Positions 55,608 to 64,000 of a stretch of 64,000 nucleotides of DNA are shown here, in pieces. Position 1 is the stretch's first letter, and every line of letters starts with the position of its first letter. The position numbers were made by a program, and so were the translations under genes. This stretch comes from Schizochytrium sp. TIO01 (Eukaryota; Protista; Bigyra: Labyrinthulomycetes). The DNA is taken from positions 1,488,001 through 1,552,000 of the forward strand of contig SMSO01000005.1 of NCBI GenBank assembly GCA_004764695.1, read 5' to 3'. The notes under the pieces are model-generated. The model had not been told where the DNA came from, ran no database searches, and saw only the letters and a program-made list of their open reading frames with translations.

Positions 55608-58600
55608 GGTCAAGCAGACGGATCTCCGTTAAAATATATCAACACGAAACTCACACTCGCCCAAGCTTGTCTGCTGATGATTCAGTTCGTTTAGTCTGTC
55701 TCGGCTCCTCAGCTCTTGATCGCAAACGAGCAACTGCTCCAGGGAGGTCGAAATGCAGGTCTGTCCGTAGCTTGGAGAAAAGGCGATCCTTAGTTCTATG
55801 AACTCTTAGTTGAACGTAACTAAGTCATTCCCCTCTCGGCTACAATTGTGACCTCCTCAGTATTAGTGTTAGTGCTTATCAATCTGTGCGATACGCAGAT
55901 AATAAGTAGATTTCTATTCCACTCTCTCTCTCCTTTTGACGCGGTTTTCACCTACCTTTAGGTAATACTACTTCTGCGTAGTTTAGGTACTTACAGAAAT
56001 TAATAAAATCCTGCTCACAATCATAAATCGTGTGTTTACCTATAAAAGAATTTGGTTTTGTTTTCAAGGGGGTATTACATCACGTTCATTACATTCATTA
56101 CATTTATTACACTACATTGCATGCCGCATCTTTGTGATCCCAGAAAAAGAAAATAGTCTCTCTTACAGCAGCCACTGCTATTGTTTTTGTTATACTCGCA
56201 CTACTGTTCACTTTTTTTCAATGCCGGGTATTACCATATACTACCTTTCTTATAGGTTGCACAAAAAAGATTCCCCTATTTTTTTGTCTCTTTTGTTGAT
56301 CTTTCTTTTTTCTTTTCTTTTTTATAGTCTAATTATTTGTAACAGACTTTCAACTATCTTAGGACCAAGCAAATCAGATTGAGATCTATGCCCACAAGCA
56401 TGGCCAGGCGTTGAGCACATCGACGCAGCAAAGGAATGAACGAACTCGGCGGGAGAAAGCTGCCAAGGGCTACCTTCAACGGATTCCTAATTTGGCCAGA
56501 AAATGTGCCTGCAGTTTTTGTTTCAGGTAGTAGCTATTTTTTGGGGCCTCCAGGGCACAACTTTTAGAAAAGCGGACATCACGATTCGCCCAAATGAACG
56601 TTTCGTGGGTATTTGCAAATTAGTCCCAAAAAAGCAGAAGCAACAACGTCGCTGCACAGCCTGCTATGGACGGGTGTTAAGCAATATATAGACGCTGGGA
56701 AACAAGCAGTACTACCGACGCAGAGCTGACACAAGCTTTCAACATCTGAGATGAGCGTGCCGTCTGGGACAATGATGCCAAAAGAAATTATAGTGGAAAT
56801 AACACCACAATAAAAGAAGCACACGAACCAGTTTGCAACTGCGAGGTTGAAGACACCAAGCGCTTACACCGCTGCCAAGCAGTAGAGAAAACATAGCGAG
56901 ATATGTAGATCACGGCGCTTATAAGAAGAATACTTGTTTAAAGTAAAACAGAAGAGTACCAAGCATTTCTATTTGTTTAGAAATGGGGTTTTGTGAGCTA
57001 GGCGTCCTTCAGCGCACAAATTTGAGGTGCTGCTTCACGAACTATTATCTATGGAGTTTGCGCTCTACACTTTTAAATATTTGATTTATGCAAAATAACG
57101 ACAAACACTATTATTGGGACTGTACATCCCCTTGCGGGTGCACAGAACCGCCGCCCTGGTTTTGTCAAAATTGGAATAGCGTTAGATGGAATACTACGTT
57201 CATAGCTCAATCTCAAAAATTTTCTTGAGTTTGCAGTCGTATATGAAGTTATTGCTCTTTTACGTTTGGCAGCACTCTTTTTATCTTATCACAATGATCA
57301 CTGTATCCAGCTATATGAGTGAGCGCTTACAGCTCGTCATCCATATTAACACCAACAGGAGTAAATAAATTCATCACACTATATCTTAGTAAAATCAATG
57401 TCCGTAGTGTTGGATATGCTGTCTCTTACAAAAAGGCTCGTAAGGCAGTTTAGGTTCACTACTTCACTATCGATGAGACCTAGCACTGATAAACTTCTCG
57501 TAAAGAGGATAAGAGTCCCATGTGATTTGTCGCAGTTGGAACGCTGCTTTGGCATAAACTGATGTACGTACATGTATGATGTATGAAATTTCGTTCTGAA
57601 TTTCTGTTGATTGTCTCCAAGAACTGAGGCGACGAATCGGCTCGTCTTTAAGACGGGTGAAGAGTGTTAATGTGAGGTTTTTCTCAATTGAAAGCATCAG
57701 GCTGCCATCAACACACGCGCATTAAGAAAGGCATAACCAACAATGGAGGCACGTTCTGAATTCCTCTAGGCTACCTCCGAGATCTGGTTTCAAAGTAAAT
57801 GATCTCAACTGCTTGTCTAAGGGTTTGCGACGCTCATCTTGACTGAAGCAAAAAGAGTAACTGCGTCGTTTGGCGCGACTTTCTCTCTATCAAGCGATGA
57901 ATAAACGAGTATGAGTACTTCATATGTTTGAATTGACAAACTATGTCAAAGCTATTATTGCTAAGAATTAGCGTATCGAAACTTATAATAGTAGTTGGCT
58001 TTTTATCCGCATTACACCGAAACGGCATACGATTGAGACGTTGTGCTTCAATCTCAATCGACTTGGGTTGGTGAGTTGATATCTTATAAGCCTACTATAG
58101 ATGTTCGAAATTTTAACTCTTGATTTTGACAGCTTCATAAATAGACTATTGTGGACGGGCGCTTCCAGGCTTTACTCAAAGCAGTACGAGTATAGAAATT
58201 GTAGATCTTTGGAGAGAGGAGGGCGGGACGGAAAGAACTCAAAGAGATTATACCAATATAGCCGATCTACTCGAAGACACTGCCAATGTTCTAACTAGCT
58301 TAACAGCTTGCGTTCTTCACAATTGGATGTGGGTGAGAGGCATTGTCCAACCTTGATCAGTGCAAAACAACTAATTTACAAGCTGGACGCATCCTGTCTG
58401 CTCAATGCTGATGAACGCTGTGAGCGTTTCTTGAAGGCCAAACCCTGTTGACGAATCTTATATTTTGTGTCATGCTGTACCTGTGAGTTGTAAGCAATCT
58501 TCTTCTACATCCGAAGAATTCTAAAACCAAGCAACTTTACTCAACAGCTTCAGAACATGCTGTTAACCTGTGAAAGAAGCCCCCTATCTCTGTAGCAGCA

Positions 58601-59050
58601 AACTTATCGCCAAACAGTCCAACGCTGTCTTGAGACAGGAAAGGATGTCAGTCGCGGGAATCTTCCTTTCGTCTTCCGTCAGCGTCATGCAAGAGGGACA
58701 GCTCCCTTTGGTCCTGTACACAATAATGATCTATATAGTGAATACTCTTACTGTAGTGTCACCTGCGAACGATCCGTTACAACAAAAGAACTAAAAGATG
58801 GATTGAAAAAGGTGTGAAACTTTGCAAAATGGATTTTCTCGTTGGCACAGCTTTTAGAAAATGAGTACTTATATTAACGTAGAAGCGATATGACGTATCC
58901 ATGATTCTGAGGGCCGAATCGACTTGTAAGAATCAGCGACTCAGTTTGTGCTCATGTAGTTGTGGTTGTGATGGTAGTGGTGAGGTAGGGAATAGAGAAG
59001 TTGTCAACATTGCAATGAATAATAAGCAAGCCCGGGGCTCAATTCCAACC

Positions 59051-59106
59051 AAGCCGAGCCAAGCCGAGCTAAGCCGAGCCGAGCCGAGCCGAGCCGAAAG
59101 CCGAGC
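59051..59106 (+). repeat. (GCCGA)n-like pentamer repeat
   Basis: Direct reading. Confidence 0.8.
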
Positions 59107-60019
59107 AGCACATGGCGTACAATTGAAACTGGGACATAGTCTAGCCCCTAGCGCTGACTTGCTCACCGATGATGGCGAAATATGCATTTTACAATCAGTG
59201 AGTGGATTAATTGCAATTGTTTGCTCACTGTATTTCCACAGCTCAGAGGTGGCATGTTGTATGGTTGCTATGACAGAAACTAACCTATCGCTTGTTAAAC
59301 TTTGTTAGTGGAAGTTAATGGACACACACACTGGGTCTCTCTAGCGCATTTATTAGGAAGAGAACGCGATTTGGAGATATGGGAATCTGCACCGCGCAGA
59401 GAGGAAAGAGTTTCCTGGCTTGCATAAAAGTTTGGGTCACGTAGGTTATACGCTTTGGCTAAGAGAGAAACAAAAAGCAACCCGGGAGAACTCGCACCTC
59501 CCATCCAGTGGCGTGGAAAGAAGTAAGAACCCTGATAAAAGACATAGTTCGAGTCCAGGAGTACGCGTGACCGTGCGCCAGTGCTTCAAGTTTGAGTTAG
59601 GCCGACATAAGAAGAAGCTGTGGCCAGTCAATTGAACGTGGCACACGCCCGACGGGTCTTTCAGTCCACAGGGAATCAACAAGCTGCTGCCTGTCAGTGT
59701 AGGTAGTAGTAAGGTAGTCGGGCTGTCAGAGGAATATTGAATATTTAGACAATCAAGTAAAGCAAATCGCAAAACTCACAGGGGACAGTAGTAGTAACAC
59801 GAGCAAAGCGGAACAAAGGCAACCACGGTGCCTTTTCAGATTGGTTTATTCCTTCTTCGCTAGATTCACAATCAAAGATAAACCAGTAGGGAGAGAGAGC
59901 AAAACCCTAAAGAGCACCAAACATATCCCTTGAGAGCATCTTCGATTCCACGTGCAAGGACGTCAGCCCCTGAAAGGTTCAGGGGCTAGATCTCTTGTAT
60001 GGTAGACGGGAAGGACGAC

Positions 60020-63000
60020 ATGGAAAGCATCGATGACAACTTACGAAGAAGGCAGGAACAATATGAGCAACAGGACCAACAACAAGAACGTCATGAGTTT
60101 GAGAGAGAGCAGCTACCGGATTTACACTCGCGCCGTCATCGCTATCCTCTCCATCTTCGGGTGGAGTCACCACCGGAAAGCCCCAGATTCGCTGTCGTAG
60201 GTGATGAAGCTGGCGATGATGGCGACCTTAGCAACAACAAAGACGAAATTTATCGAGCTATTAACGAAGCGGGTTTCGACAGCCTACGGGGAAGTTATGA
60301 AGTACCTGGGTCAACACAAGATGTTGGATTCCAGAGAGGGTCAGGAAGCCTCGTTTATATTGGTGAAGTTGTTGCCTCGAGCATCTATCAGGGCATCGGT
60401 CTATCAACGAGCAGAAATCGTCAGGTACATGATCGCACAAAACTCTCAGTGCACCAAGGTAGTAACAAAAAACCTTTTACATTGCTTCAACTGAAAATCA
60501 TTTCCAGTGTTCCAAGTGAAGCTTTACTCGTTCACCTTTATGAGGTAGACGAAGAATGCAACTTTACCCTAAGGATGCGCTCTTCGACTTCGATTGAAAT
60601 GTACCCAGATCAAAAATGGGAAGACATTGCAGAAACCATGATTAAAACTCGCTTTCCTCGTCTTGCAAGGTTTCCAGTCAAGTTTATTAACTCAAAGACT
60701 CGTAGAGAGTCTGCCGGAAGTGTAACTAAGTTTTTTGATAGCAGTAAAAGCTTGGCAGATATAGAGGAAACCAAAGACGAAGAAGAGGACTGTCTGTCTC
60801 AATCTGCAGAAAGCGAGAGTAAAACAACAAAAATAGGTGCAATGACATCCAACTCAAGGTCTTCTGCAGCAAGTAGTGTATCAGTTGGCGTATCGGAACC
60901 GGAGGGTCTACCAAGCCCAAGACAAAGTATTCTTATCTATTCTCCCAGAGGAGCTTCCAATGAAATCATAGTTGATCTCTGCCCAGAAGCAGTTGAAGCT
61001 CTATCAGGTCCAGGGGATGTGATCAAATCTACTTTTTATTGCCCCCGCATGGAGCGTGAGCGACATTTTGTTTGGCAGTGGACAAAAGACGGTCTTGTAC
61101 GATCTCCTCTGACACATAACATCGGCGGCATACAGATGAGTAGCATACCTACCCCGATATTCCACACAAGTGAGGATAGCCTCGCTTTAATCCCCCCCCC
61201 AATGGCTGCTCTACCAGGGAGGGCACCGCCTTTGTCTTCAACATTCATTTTTGATCTCGATGCATCTACAACAAACGGCCTTATTCCTATTAATGTTCTC
61301 CGTAATGCATTATTGAACCGCTGGAAGTTTGACGCAAGGCTCGTGGAGAATGAGATTCTTTATGACGTACAAGCTTCACCAGACAGCGAAAGCGACGGTG
61401 TTGGCCCAAGCTTGATCACTAAAATCAACACTCGCTTGAGAAATCACATTCTGGAAGGAGATACAGAAAATATTGATGAAGGTACCCGGGAAGTCATTCT
61501 AGCATTGTTTCCGTTTGCGTGTAGAGTAAGCCTTGAGTCACTGAGCGGGGGTTTTAGTGGAGCAAAAGTTTACAGATGCGTCAACACAAACTGGGACGGC
61601 CTACAAGAGATCCCATCTGTTGTCAAGGTTGACGATGGCAATTCTTTGGATGATGAATATAATCGCATGGTTGAAATTACACCGTTACTAGGAGAAAATG
61701 CACCGCGTATTCTCGCAAGGTCTTCCCATGGTCCTCTGAGCGCCCTTCGAATTGAGCTTTGTGGCGCTACATGGTGTCTCCCAGGTGCAGGAGCGTATAA
61801 TACACAAATTGCAACGTTTCGAAAACTATTTACGTCAGAAATGTTGAGACTGGTTCACACAAACTCTCGTGTTAAATCATACGTGGCGCACCGCCGGGGA
61901 AGGCCGTTCCATGCATCTACTACAGAATTACCATATTACCATGGAAATGGCAGCAAGGAACTCCCAGTGGTTTCCCCCCCTCGTAGGATGATTGCACGTG
62001 CAACAAGCGATTCGGTCACCCCAAAGGATTTTGACATTACAGTTCCAGCGTTAACAGGAGGAGAACGGCGTAAGGTTATGAGACAACGTTCTTTTACATC
62101 CGAGCTCCAAGCTGGCCCAACCTCGAGCGTTTTAAAGCATCGCATCCTTCAACGTTCATCAACCATTTCAAGTGGTTCAAACGGACAATCTGCATTCGAT
62201 GATTACAGTATACTTTTTGGTGAAATTGAGACGGTTATTGGCGAGGTATTTGGAACAATCTTACATCAAGGAGCCACAGATAAGGCTCGAATCGAAGAAA
62301 AAAGCCTATTCAGTGATGACGGTTATCCTATCGCTGCTGCTATACGACAAAATATTATTGACCGTGAGAATGATCCAGTTGCTGATCTATTCATCGGCAG
62401 GGATGCTCGTGCAATGGTTAAAATATGGACAGGTGTCGACCGCATGGATGTGAAAGAGTACTTTGAGCAATTCGCCACCATCCTTCAACGCTATGAACTT
62501 GATCAATCAACGAAACATCGTCTTATGGGGCATGTTCATGGTGATTTAAATGGAGCGAACATTCTCATTGACGGTGAAAGTATCGTGTGGCTAATCGACT
62601 TTGCTTTTTCAGGGTATCGTCCAGTTCTTACTGACTTGATGAAGCTTGAGAACACTATTTTGTTCGAGTACACTCCACTCCAAACATCTAAGGATCGTGG
62701 TATTGCAATCGATGATTTCATCAAGGTCATCCGTGCTCTGATTCACACGGATTTGGTTGAGCTTCCTCCTTTGACGTCGTTACTTTCAGACAGCAAGTCA
62801 ACTGAACACCTTGCCATTGACCAGCTTTGGAGTGTACTTCAGCGCCTTCGACAGCACGTGGTGAGCTTTTGTGCAAAGGATCCCAGACCAGAATACTTAC
62901 ACGCCGGGCGTCTGTTTTATGCGCTGAAAACGCTGGCCTTTCGCGATGTTTCTATTGAGCAGAAGAAACTAGCCCTTGGAAGCGCGTTGGGCCATGCAAG

Positions 63001-64000
63001 CCGACTTGCCAGCATTCTGGCGCCCGGTTCGCTTGGGCCCGTGCGACATCTTCAAGTATTTACCTCATTTACTGAACATAACCCTATCGATGCTCGGGTG
63101 CATGCATATCAGATGAGCTTAGAGCGCGAACAGGTGAAGCATTTCACAATCGTAGGTTCCAAAGATTCAGCATTTGTAGACCCGGTTTCCCAGAATCGGT
63201 TGTCCGTCCTCAAAGAATGTGTACGCTTAGATATATGCGAACATTCTCTTGGTGTCAATGAAGAACCTCCAACAACACGCCACAAGTTGTCAGTACGCGA
63301 AATGATGGAATATTTGTGGGCAGTTCGCGAGGTTTGCGAAAACACCACTGATTGTCAACCTTTCAAGAACGAAATATGTCCTTCCGACATCCCCGCTCTA
63401 TGCGCGAATCAGCGATTACGTGAGGACTACGAGCAGCTAGGAGCAACGTCAAGCCTGCAAGAGGTACTTGAATTAACTCTCAAACCTTTGGTATCTCTTG
63501 CAGTTAATATGCAATATGTGCCTGTAGCAGAGTTTTTTCGTCGCTTTATGTTTACGCTAGTCTATCTGGAAGGAATAAACAACCCTGCTGGAGCTTCATC
63601 ACCAAATACACAGTTACTTCGACGAGCTTCTCTAGCCGTGGCATCTGAGCTGGATTCACAATTGTATGATGTTTTGGCTGAGGTTTCCAAGCTATTTCCG
63701 TCTGATGTGCGATTGACTGATGTACGACACCTCGTAATTTTAGGTGGACCTGCCAGTGGCAAGAGTGTTCTTTTACGTCAGATCCTTGTACGACTATCTA
63801 TAGCCCAGAATCATCGCTCTCCTATTGCTCTAGTTCCACTCCGTATTCGCCTTATTGACATGGCTCGCCTCATTGAAGAACACAAACTCACCGAGAACGA
63901 CGACCTCATCATGTGCTACCTTGCAAATGCGTATGGCGCAATGTCAATGAAATTATCCTACTTTCGGTCTATTTTATTCTCAGGTAGAGTTCTTTTGCTA
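60020..64000 (+). CDS. Large (at least 1327 aa, 3'-partial) protein: unknown N-terminus, APH-like/TCAD9-type kinase and NACHT-like STAND NTPase
   Basis: Hand translation from ATG 60020 is stop-free to the window end. LSGGFSGAKVY at 61541, SVVKVD, HGDLNGANIL at 62537, WLIDFA (D at 62597), Walker A LVILGGPASGKS (G at 63743), VPLRIRL, and GRVLLL at the edge. Confidence 0.85.
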   Translation, partial: MESIDDNLRRRQEQYEQQDQQQERHEFEREQLPDLHSRRHRYPLHLRVESPPESPRFAVVGDEAGDDGDLSNNKDEIYRAINEAGFDSLRGSYEVPGSTQDVGFQRGSGSLVYIGEVVASSIYQGIGLSTSRNRQVHDRTKLSVHQGSNKKPFTLLQLKIISSVPSEALLVHLYEVDEECNFTLRMRSSTSIEMYPDQKWEDIAETMIKTRFPRLARFPVKFINSKTRRESAGSVTKFFDSSKSLADIEETKDEEEDCLSQSAESESKTTKIGAMTSNSRSSAASSVSVGVSEPEGLPSPRQSILIYSPRGASNEIIVDLCPEAVEALSGPGDVIKSTFYCPRMERERHFVWQWTKDGLVRSPLTHNIGGIQMSSIPTPIFHTSEDSLALIPPPMAALPGRAPPLSSTFIFDLDASTTNGLIPINVLRNALLNRWKFDARLVENEILYDVQASPDSESDGVGPSLITKINTRLRNHILEGDTENIDEGTREVILALFPFACRVSLESLSGGFSGAKVYRCVNTNWDGLQEIPSVVKVDDGNSLDDEYNRMVEITPLLGENAPRILARSSHGPLSALRIELCGATWCLPGAGAYNTQIATFRKLFTSEMLRLVHTNSRVKSYVAHRRGRPFHASTTELPYYHGNGSKELPVVSPPRRMIARATSDSVTPKDFDITVPALTGGERRKVMRQRSFTSELQAGPTSSVLKHRILQRSSTISSGSNGQSAFDDYSILFGEIETVIGEVFGTILHQGATDKARIEEKSLFSDDGYPIAAAIRQNIIDRENDPVADLFIGRDARAMVKIWTGVDRMDVKEYFEQFATILQRYELDQSTKHRLMGHVHGDLNGANILIDGESIVWLIDFAFSGYRPVLTDLMKLENTILFEYTPLQTSKDRGIAIDDFIKVIRALIHTDLVELPPLTSLLSDSKSTEHLAIDQLWSVLQRLRQHVVSFCAKDPRPEYLHAGRLFYALKTLAFRDVSIEQKKLALGSALGHASRLASILAPGSLGPVRHLQVFTSFTEHNPIDARVHAYQMSLEREQVKHFTIVGSKDSAFVDPVSQNRLSVLKECVRLDICEHSLGVNEEPPTTRHKLSVREMMEYLWAVREVCENTTDCQPFKNEICPSDIPALCANQRLREDYEQLGATSSLQEVLELTLKPLVSLAVNMQYVPVAEFFRRFMFTLVYLEGINNPAGASSPNTQLLRRASLAVASELDSQLYDVLAEVSKLFPSDVRLTDVRHLVILGGPASGKSVLLRQILVRLSIAQNHRSPIALVPLRIRLIDMARLIEEHKLTENDDLIMCYLANAYGAMSMKLSYFRSILFSGRVLLL

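Follow-up and report, generated by a model that had tools for sequence, protein, structure and literature searches.

The 64,000-nucleotide stretch of Schizochytrium sp. TIO01 DNA analyzed here (the window, G000:C4:1488001-1552000) ends inside a gene for a large receptor-like protein. Read from its sequence, the locus (60020..64000, + strand, and on past the window edge) holds an intact gene, free of introns, for a 2,139-aa STAND protein resembling the NOD-like receptors (NLRs), encoded by a thraustochytrid-type protist. The predicted layout is an N-terminal region, a TCAD9 (APH/RIO-like) kinase, a linker, a NACHT NTPase made of a nucleotide-binding domain, a first helical domain, a winged-helix domain and a second helical domain (NBD-HD1-WHD-HD2), and about 7-9 ankyrin repeats. 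By analogy with proteins of the same design, our favored interpretation, held with moderate confidence, is that it would serve as an NLR-like defence or stress-surveillance receptor.

The initial annotation of the window, made from the DNA letters alone, had pointed to an open frame of at least 1327 codons that lacked a stop in the window and could be read without an intron. Translation of 60020-64000 gave 1,327 stop-free sense codons (aa 1-1327), and extension along the contig added 812 more before a stop codon at window-equivalent 66437-66439 (G000:C4:1554439; L004:1020-7439), giving a single 2,139-aa open reading frame (ORF), uninterrupted from 60020 to 66439. All of the motifs quoted in that annotation were found in place on the translation. 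The nearest in-frame stop 5' of the ATG at 60020 is ~10 codons away, and the earliest in-frame ATG downstream of that stop would add a possible 7-codon N-terminal extension (59999..60019, +) for a product of 2,146 aa. The gene lies within a 1.9-Mb contig and its GC content is roughly 46%; the length of the ORF in DNA of this composition rules out a chance origin. Collinear relatives are present in other organisms, among them P0001 of Hondaea fermentalgiana, which follows the protein along its whole length with 52% overall identity.

The kinase is built of two lobes, both on the + strand. The N-lobe (aa 481-612; 61460..61855), which is the second matched stretch of the Pfam TCAD9 model (PF19974), contains the Gly-loop GGFSG (aa 510-514; 61547-61561), the beta3 lysine K536 within VVKVD (61625-61627) and the helix-C glutamate E546 within DDEYNRM (61655-61657). 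The C-lobe (aa 736-1000; 62225..63019), where the best TCAD9 stretch covers aa 825-972, contains the catalytic loop HGDLNGAN (62537-62560; HGDLNGANIL is aa 840-849), the metal-binding IDFA (aa 859-862; 62594-62605) and DLMKLE (aa 872-877; 62633-62650). The full catalytic set of the kinase fold is thus in place (Gly-loop, beta3 Lys, helix-C Glu, HGDxxxxN and metal-binding Asp). TCAD9 scored 92.1 bits (E 5.6e-26) on the part encoded in the window, above the gathering threshold of 40 bits, with 90.5 bits on the full protein and 72.3 bits in a six-frame search of the genome, bearing out the TCAD9/APH-like assignment of the initial annotation. Membership among the ordinary choline/ethanolamine kinases, an outcome that would have undone this assignment, was rejected, with PF01633 reaching 13.7 bits, far under its cutoff of 29. 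The APH model (PF01636) did pass its cutoff (27 bits against 23.2), but its match is confined to ~53 residues around the catalytic loop and thus indicates similarity at the superfamily level only. A phmmer search of the kinase region against PDB sequences gave no useful match, and a kinase-only profile gave weak matches to GCN2, RIO2 and RNase L (E 5e-5 or weaker, catalytic loop only) and none to APH or choline kinases. Since these matches are weak and limited to the catalytic loop, the substrate class is not readable from sequence; the HGDLNGAN loop and the IDF metal site resemble both RIO/Bud32/GCN2-type and APH-type kinases.

The two lobes, which are 68-79% identical to those of Hondaea P0001 (79% for the N-lobe), are separated by a low-complexity, Ser/Thr/Arg-rich insert of about 120 residues (aa 613-735; 61856..62224, +). 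The insert is poorly conserved (39% identity to P0001) and is absent or variable, also in length, in other relatives. It holds several RxRS/RRxxS/RS-type sites and, speculatively, could be a regulatory phosphorylation loop.

The kinase is joined by a linker (aa 1001-1225; 63020..63694, +), matched by a family hidden Markov model (HMM) in most fusion relatives and by no Pfam model, to the NACHT nucleotide-binding domain, of which the window holds the start (aa 1226-1327; 63695..64000, +). Walker A, GGPASGKS, is at aa 1242-1249 (63743-63766, +) and the last residues of the window are GRVLLL (aa 1322-1327, up to 64000). The initial annotation had called the P-loop NACHT-like and predicted a Walker B of the form hhhhDGhDE just past 64000. 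The contig continues with FDGFDEAG directly beyond the edge, which joined to the end of the window reads LLLFDGFDE (aa 1325-1333), a NACHT-type Walker B. Outside the window, all on the + strand, are the Walker B acidic residues D1329-E1333 (window-equivalent 64004-64018), the sensor-1 residue R1362 and the HD1-WHD-HD2 portion, up to about aa 1760 (about 65299). In an alignment of ten family members D1329, G1330, D1332, E1333 and R1362 are invariant and G1247 and K1248 nearly so. Pfam NACHT (PF05729) covered model positions 3-160 of 167 with 21.7-25.5 bits by hmmscan, below the cutoff of 26.7, and reached 27.1 bits in the six-frame genome search; NPHP3_N, with 27.1 bits against a cutoff of 24.8, was the only P-loop Pfam model above cutoff in the hmmscan run. 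With NACHT, the relatives P0008 and P0009 reach 45 and 50 bits. Structure prediction was run on the NACHT module and on the N-terminal region, and the predicted NBD-HD1-WHD-HD2 fold is closer to solved NLRs than to other AAA+ proteins. A phmmer search of the NACHT region against PDB sequences gave no useful match.

A repeat sensor domain had likewise been predicted downstream, and ankyrin repeats follow the NACHT domain at about aa 1761-2100 (window-equivalent 65300-66319, +). Within aa 1838-2075 Ank_2 (PF12796) scored 119.6 bits over 4 stretches and Ank (PF00023) 85 bits over 5, and the ankyrin families of Pfam span 66-120 bits in the full protein. The order kinase, NACHT, ankyrin is that of effector-NOD-repeat proteins with superstructure-forming C-terminal repeats.

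A HMMER scan with the kinase region over 1.84 billion cluster representatives returned 515 relatives at E <=1e-3 and 133 at E <=1e-10. Scored with the family-built HMMs, 38 of the 151 best relatives were kinase-NACHT fusions. All fusions with a source name were eukaryotic: labyrinthulomycete (P0001, P0006 and P0027 of Hondaea fermentalgiana), dinoflagellate (Durusdinium trenchii, Prorocentrum/Polarella and the MGD dinoflagellate transcriptome), green algal (Cymbomonas tetramitiformis) or EukProt entries including Trinity transcripts; unnamed metagenomic fusions were assigned to eukaryotes by tree position and named cluster mates only. The subfamilies are common to labyrinthulomycetes and dinoflagellates. 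The C-terminal sensors vary among ankyrin, RNI-type leucine-rich repeats (LRR; P0005 and P0134), HEAT (P0006-P0009), RCC1 (P0034) and WWE (P0016). The C. tetramitiformis protein P0134 (2761 aa) has the order TCAD9-NACHT-LRR(x8+)-ZU5-TIR_2 and unites the kinase with classic death/immune signalling domains in one chain. A second search, with the NACHT region as query, returned family members and one weak SIR2_2-NACHT protein only; as the matches are nearly all family members, this search is uninformative on the origin of the NACHT domain.

On the number of paralogs, a point raised by the initial annotation, the same genome holds at least four TCAD9-NACHT loci (on contigs C4, C13, C24 and C30) and a weak one on C5, with at least seven NACHT loci in all. 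The paralogs on C13, C24 and C30 match the Logan-derived proteins P0008, P0013 and P0023. At the C13 paralog a 1,268-aa frame (L013:3638-7441) is immediately followed by a second open frame, at least 855 aa long and in another phase (L013:7434-9998); a frameshift, a short intron or an error of assembly could account for the phase change. The N-terminal region of this paralog is identical, in the aligned part, to the 3,992-aa P0008, which suggests that C13 carries one long gene. In P0008 and P0009 (3,992 and 3,765 aa) another P-loop STAND-like module (NPHP3_N/AAA_16) lies around residues 3200-3480, which would give two switches per chain; P0008 matches DUF4062 as well. The public Hondaea gene model P0001 (2132 aa) lacks 33 residues covering Walker A and the next strand, with flanks that align to aa 1226-1400, and this gap is probably a wrongly predicted intron in the annotation.

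In the databases these relatives bear automatic names such as 'Ankyrin repeat domain-containing protein 17', 'APH domain-containing protein', 'Protein nlrc3' and a TCAD9-based UniRef name. Our literature searches returned no description of a TCAD9-NACHT family, nor of a labyrinthulomycete NACHT repertoire. The proteins themselves are already in public databases, and the kinase-NLR as a concept is already known from fungi, whose NLRs have a NACHT/NB-ARC core, ANK/WD40/TPR repeats and enzymatic N-terminal domains that include the canonical kinase PF00069 (Dyrka et al. 2014, PMC4986451). In those proteins the kinase is the canonical eukaryotic one, whereas here it is the APH/RIO-like TCAD9 (PF19974) and the lineages are stramenopile, alveolate and green algal.

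The order effector-NACHT-repeat is shared with the animal NLRs NLRC4, NLRP3 and NOD2, although the effector here is a TCAD9 kinase placed after a region of ~480 aa instead of a CARD, PYD or BIR domain, the sensor is ankyrin instead of LRR, sequence identity is only 10-14%, and the immune function of the present protein is a prediction from architecture. In bacteria the bNACHT core has been described as a signalling hub fused to diverse effectors and C-terminal sensors (Kibby et al., bioRxiv 10.1101/2022.07.19.500537). The bNACHT and Avs-type STANDs are hubs of the same kind, joined to enzymatic effectors and C-terminal sensors, but no bacterial TCAD9-NACHT fusion was found among the relatives. 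PADLOC gave ankyrin-driven matches and one weak mad8 match and nothing else.

In solved NLRs and STANDs the repeats autoinhibit the NACHT module until a ligand triggers nucleotide exchange and oligomerisation, and the effector is then activated by induced proximity. By analogy, the ankyrin repeats would keep the NACHT module closed and ADP-bound, binding of a ligand would let nucleotide exchange and oligomerisation occur, and the oligomer would gather the kinase domains and switch them on. The kinases would then phosphorylate a substrate, which may be a protein or a small metabolite of the NAD/ADP-ribose/nucleotide type. The most likely role that we infer, as for other effector-NOD-repeat proteins, is a surveillance function that feeds into defence, cell death or stress. 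An immune role is plausible in view of the mixed sensors and of the member with ZU5 and TIR domains.

Several points weigh against a defence receptor or against the working of the switch as proposed. The ankyrin region is collinear with that of Hondaea P0001 and 47% identical to it, a value similar to that of other non-catalytic regions, and the copy number is low (at least four TCAD9-NACHT loci); neither is what one would expect of a rapidly diversifying immune sensor, and both temper the immune role. The bacterial TCAD9 proteins nearest to this one do not stand out as defence genes, confidence in the NACHT model is low over the Walker A stretch (predicted local distance difference test, pLDDT), the PDB searches found no solved structure close in sequence, and we know of no experiment on any TCAD9 protein.

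A serious though distinctly less probable possibility is a protein of identical architecture acting as a conserved, non-immune, STAND-gated kinase switch with a housekeeping or developmental task, for example in life-cycle or stress signalling. NPHP3, TEP1 and LRRK2 are non-immune NACHT or ROCO proteins. LRRK2/ROCO proteins, like the present one, are large, with ankyrin repeats, a nucleotide-dependent switch and a kinase, and a weak ANK_LRRK2 Pfam match was found here; theirs, however, is a ROC GTPase with COR and a canonical protein kinase placed after the switch, and the likeness is one of analogy only. A one-to-one collinear relative in another genus, the lack of a large expansion of NACHT or TCAD9-NACHT loci, the subfamilies shared between labyrinthulomycetes and dinoflagellates and the standing of NPHP3_N as the sole P-loop model above cutoff would all suit such a switch. 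The combinatorial swapping of sensor repeats and the ZU5/TIR member are, on the other hand, typical of immune or death NLRs, and the weak NACHT relative found with the NACHT query bears a SIR2-type domain.

A further question is whether the TCAD9 domain is an enzyme at all. Most kinase domains of the bacterial vWA ternary systems have been proposed to act as pseudo-enzymes or adaptors, and in most Ser/Thr/Tyr kinase domains of those systems the catalytic residues are disrupted (Kaur et al. 2020, PMC7159879). If the same held here, TCAD9 would not transfer phosphate but would bind nucleotide as a pseudo-enzyme or serve as an adaptor for oligomerisation, and the 120-residue low-complexity insert within the kinase would fit such a role. 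Conservation argues otherwise. In the alignment of ten family members H840, G841, D842, L843, N844, N847, D860, F861, A862, D872 and K875 are invariant. The comparison was widened with two alignments that take in 25-29 bacterial TCAD9 sequences (26-30 eukaryotic and bacterial sequences in all), and G510, G511, S513, K536, E546, H840, G841, D842, N847, D860, D872 and R944 are invariant in both, with K875 and E877 invariant in one of the two and nearly so in the other. The APH-like kinase is, in addition, the one singled out as active among ternary-system effectors, in 'a few examples' only (Kaur et al. 2020, PMC7159879). With all catalytic residues present and invariant family-wide, the kinase appears to be under selection as an enzyme and is predicted to be catalytically competent, and we consider a pseudo-enzyme improbable.

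The bacterial kin of the kinase were sought in the species genomes of GTDB, where at least 327 TCAD9 matches were obtained in Myxococcota, Leptospira, Actinomycetota, Planctomycetota, Bacteroidota, Cyanobacteria-related lineages and others. In the 80 best GTDB loci (L017-L096) the gene encodes a conserved stand-alone protein of ~790 aa, in which Pfam and PDB-profile searches recognized an isochorismatase/nicotinamidase-like domain, TCAD9 and a dual-specificity/protein tyrosine (DSP/PTP) phosphatase. The phosphatase part is CDKN3/KAP-like at 8e-32 and also matches the PTP-SAK, Tc-R-P and PTP-NADK models; the PDB profile built from a mixed bacterial alignment was swamped by phosphatase matches. 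The homologous kinase has the identical catalytic motif set, but the NACHT domain of the family was found in none of the 80 loci, either in the same ORF or within ~6 kb. The three-domain enzyme occurs in at least ten phyla (for example L033:5254-7638 of Leptospira ainazelensis and L025:5059-7536 of Enhygromyxa salina) and seems to be the form in which TCAD9 chiefly occurs in bacteria; our literature searches found no description of this PTP-SAK/isochorismatase architecture.

The initial annotation had attributed the kinase pattern to bacterial ternary conflict systems. The family homology and the identical catalytic motifs stand. No vWA or MoxR genes were seen near the three bacterial loci whose neighbours were scanned, and the neighbourhoods in these three genomes are unrelated to each other. 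Given the lack of vWA/MoxR genes there and the 'few examples' of Kaur et al. (2020, PMC7159879), the label 'ternary conflict system' does not fit the closest bacterial kin. In a maximum-likelihood tree of the kinase domain, one branch separates every bacterial-type row from all of the NACHT fusions, on whose side two kinase-only rows of unknown origin also lie. The Shimodaira-Hasegawa-like approximate likelihood ratio support of this branch, from a quick search, is 98, and 100 after removal of five long-branch rows. The tree supports the fusion clade having arisen once. It is unrooted and does not support a direction of transfer from bacteria to eukaryotes; the bacterial ancestry put forward in the initial annotation would be a conjecture beyond it.

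The region in front of the kinase gave no Pfam match over aa 1-480, even at E 10. Its core (aa 91-480; 60290..61459, +) is recognized by a family HMM and conserved in 8 fusion relatives from the databases and in two paralogs of the same genome (C13 and C30). Descent from the bacterial isochorismatase-like domain was considered and rejected (hhalign probability 0.5%). The named ESM Atlas clusters for the region all belong to the NUDIX clan, at 0.93-0.95 for P0005 and 0.87-0.90 for this protein. No NUDIX box (GX5EX7REUXEEXGU) is recognisable in this protein; the box-like GEx4AAxRxVxEExG occurs only in a paralogous subfamily (P0005, P0016, P0006 and the C13 paralog), and the gene's own subfamily is degenerate at this position. 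The AlphaFold2 model of the region, with a pLDDT of 47.6, is too poor for a firm fold call. Three weak lines agree on a lead, namely that the region may consist of a degenerate NUDIX-like fold with a small helical domain after it.

Alongside TCAD9 stand NUDIX-like and WWE domains in eukaryotes, and nicotinamidase-like isochorismatase and PTP-NADK-related DSP phosphatases in bacteria. As all of these partners handle NAD, ADP-ribose or phosphate-ester small molecules, a metabolite substrate is worth testing on the grounds of guilt by association. TCAD9-NACHT proteins would then form an undescribed class of NLR-like receptors of stramenopiles, dinoflagellates and green algae that phosphorylate a metabolite of the NAD/ADP-ribose/nucleotide type and not a protein, a proposal that we put forward as an unlikely one. 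The kinase would in that case act with the NUDIX-like N-domain, and in bacteria with the nicotinamidase-like and phosphatase domains.

A last reading takes the frame for something other than a working gene, such as a relic that is not expressed, a chimera made in assembly or contaminant DNA. It would accord with the failure to find the exact 2,139-aa protein in a large protein collection, but merits very little credence against 2,139 stop-free codons with all motifs conserved, an identical order of domains in independent genomes and transcriptomes, the position of the locus within a 1.9-Mb contig and the Logan-derived matches of the three paralogs.

In the ~4.4 kb on the 5' side of the gene (window 55614-59998) there is no ORF of 150 aa or more, and the GC content is 37-43% over 56000-59000, against about 46% in the gene; this stretch may be intergenic or promoter DNA or may hold an intron-rich or non-coding feature. 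A tandem peptide-like repeat, AELSRAEPSRAE in translation, lies at about 59050-59110, and an (AAWLR)n repeat lies several kb downstream of the gene, near the 3' end of L002 (about C4:1560700); both are probably simple-sequence DNA. A convergent ORF (L004:7826-8998, -) lies outside the window, about 1.4 kb past the stop codon of the gene.

Much work has been done on the NLR-type receptors of animals, plants, fungi and, by now, bacteria, but to our knowledge almost nothing is known of those of free-living protists; the TCAD9 kinase family has, as far as we know, neither a solved structure nor a known substrate. The family described here pairs an animal-like NACHT module with this orphan kinase family. 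It is compact and experimentally accessible, with only about four copies in the genome and hosts, the thraustochytrids, that are genetically manipulable. If its role is immune, it would widen NLR biology by a new type of effector chemistry and furnish a further case of an immune toolkit shared between bacteria and eukaryotes, and a metabolite-kinase output, if true, would place a new kind of immune effector reaction beside the TIR and SIR2 NADases. If its role is not immune, it would still be the first eukaryotic context for TCAD9. Together with the bacterial isochorismatase-TCAD9-phosphatase enzyme, the family offers a route to the biochemical function of an orphan kinase family.

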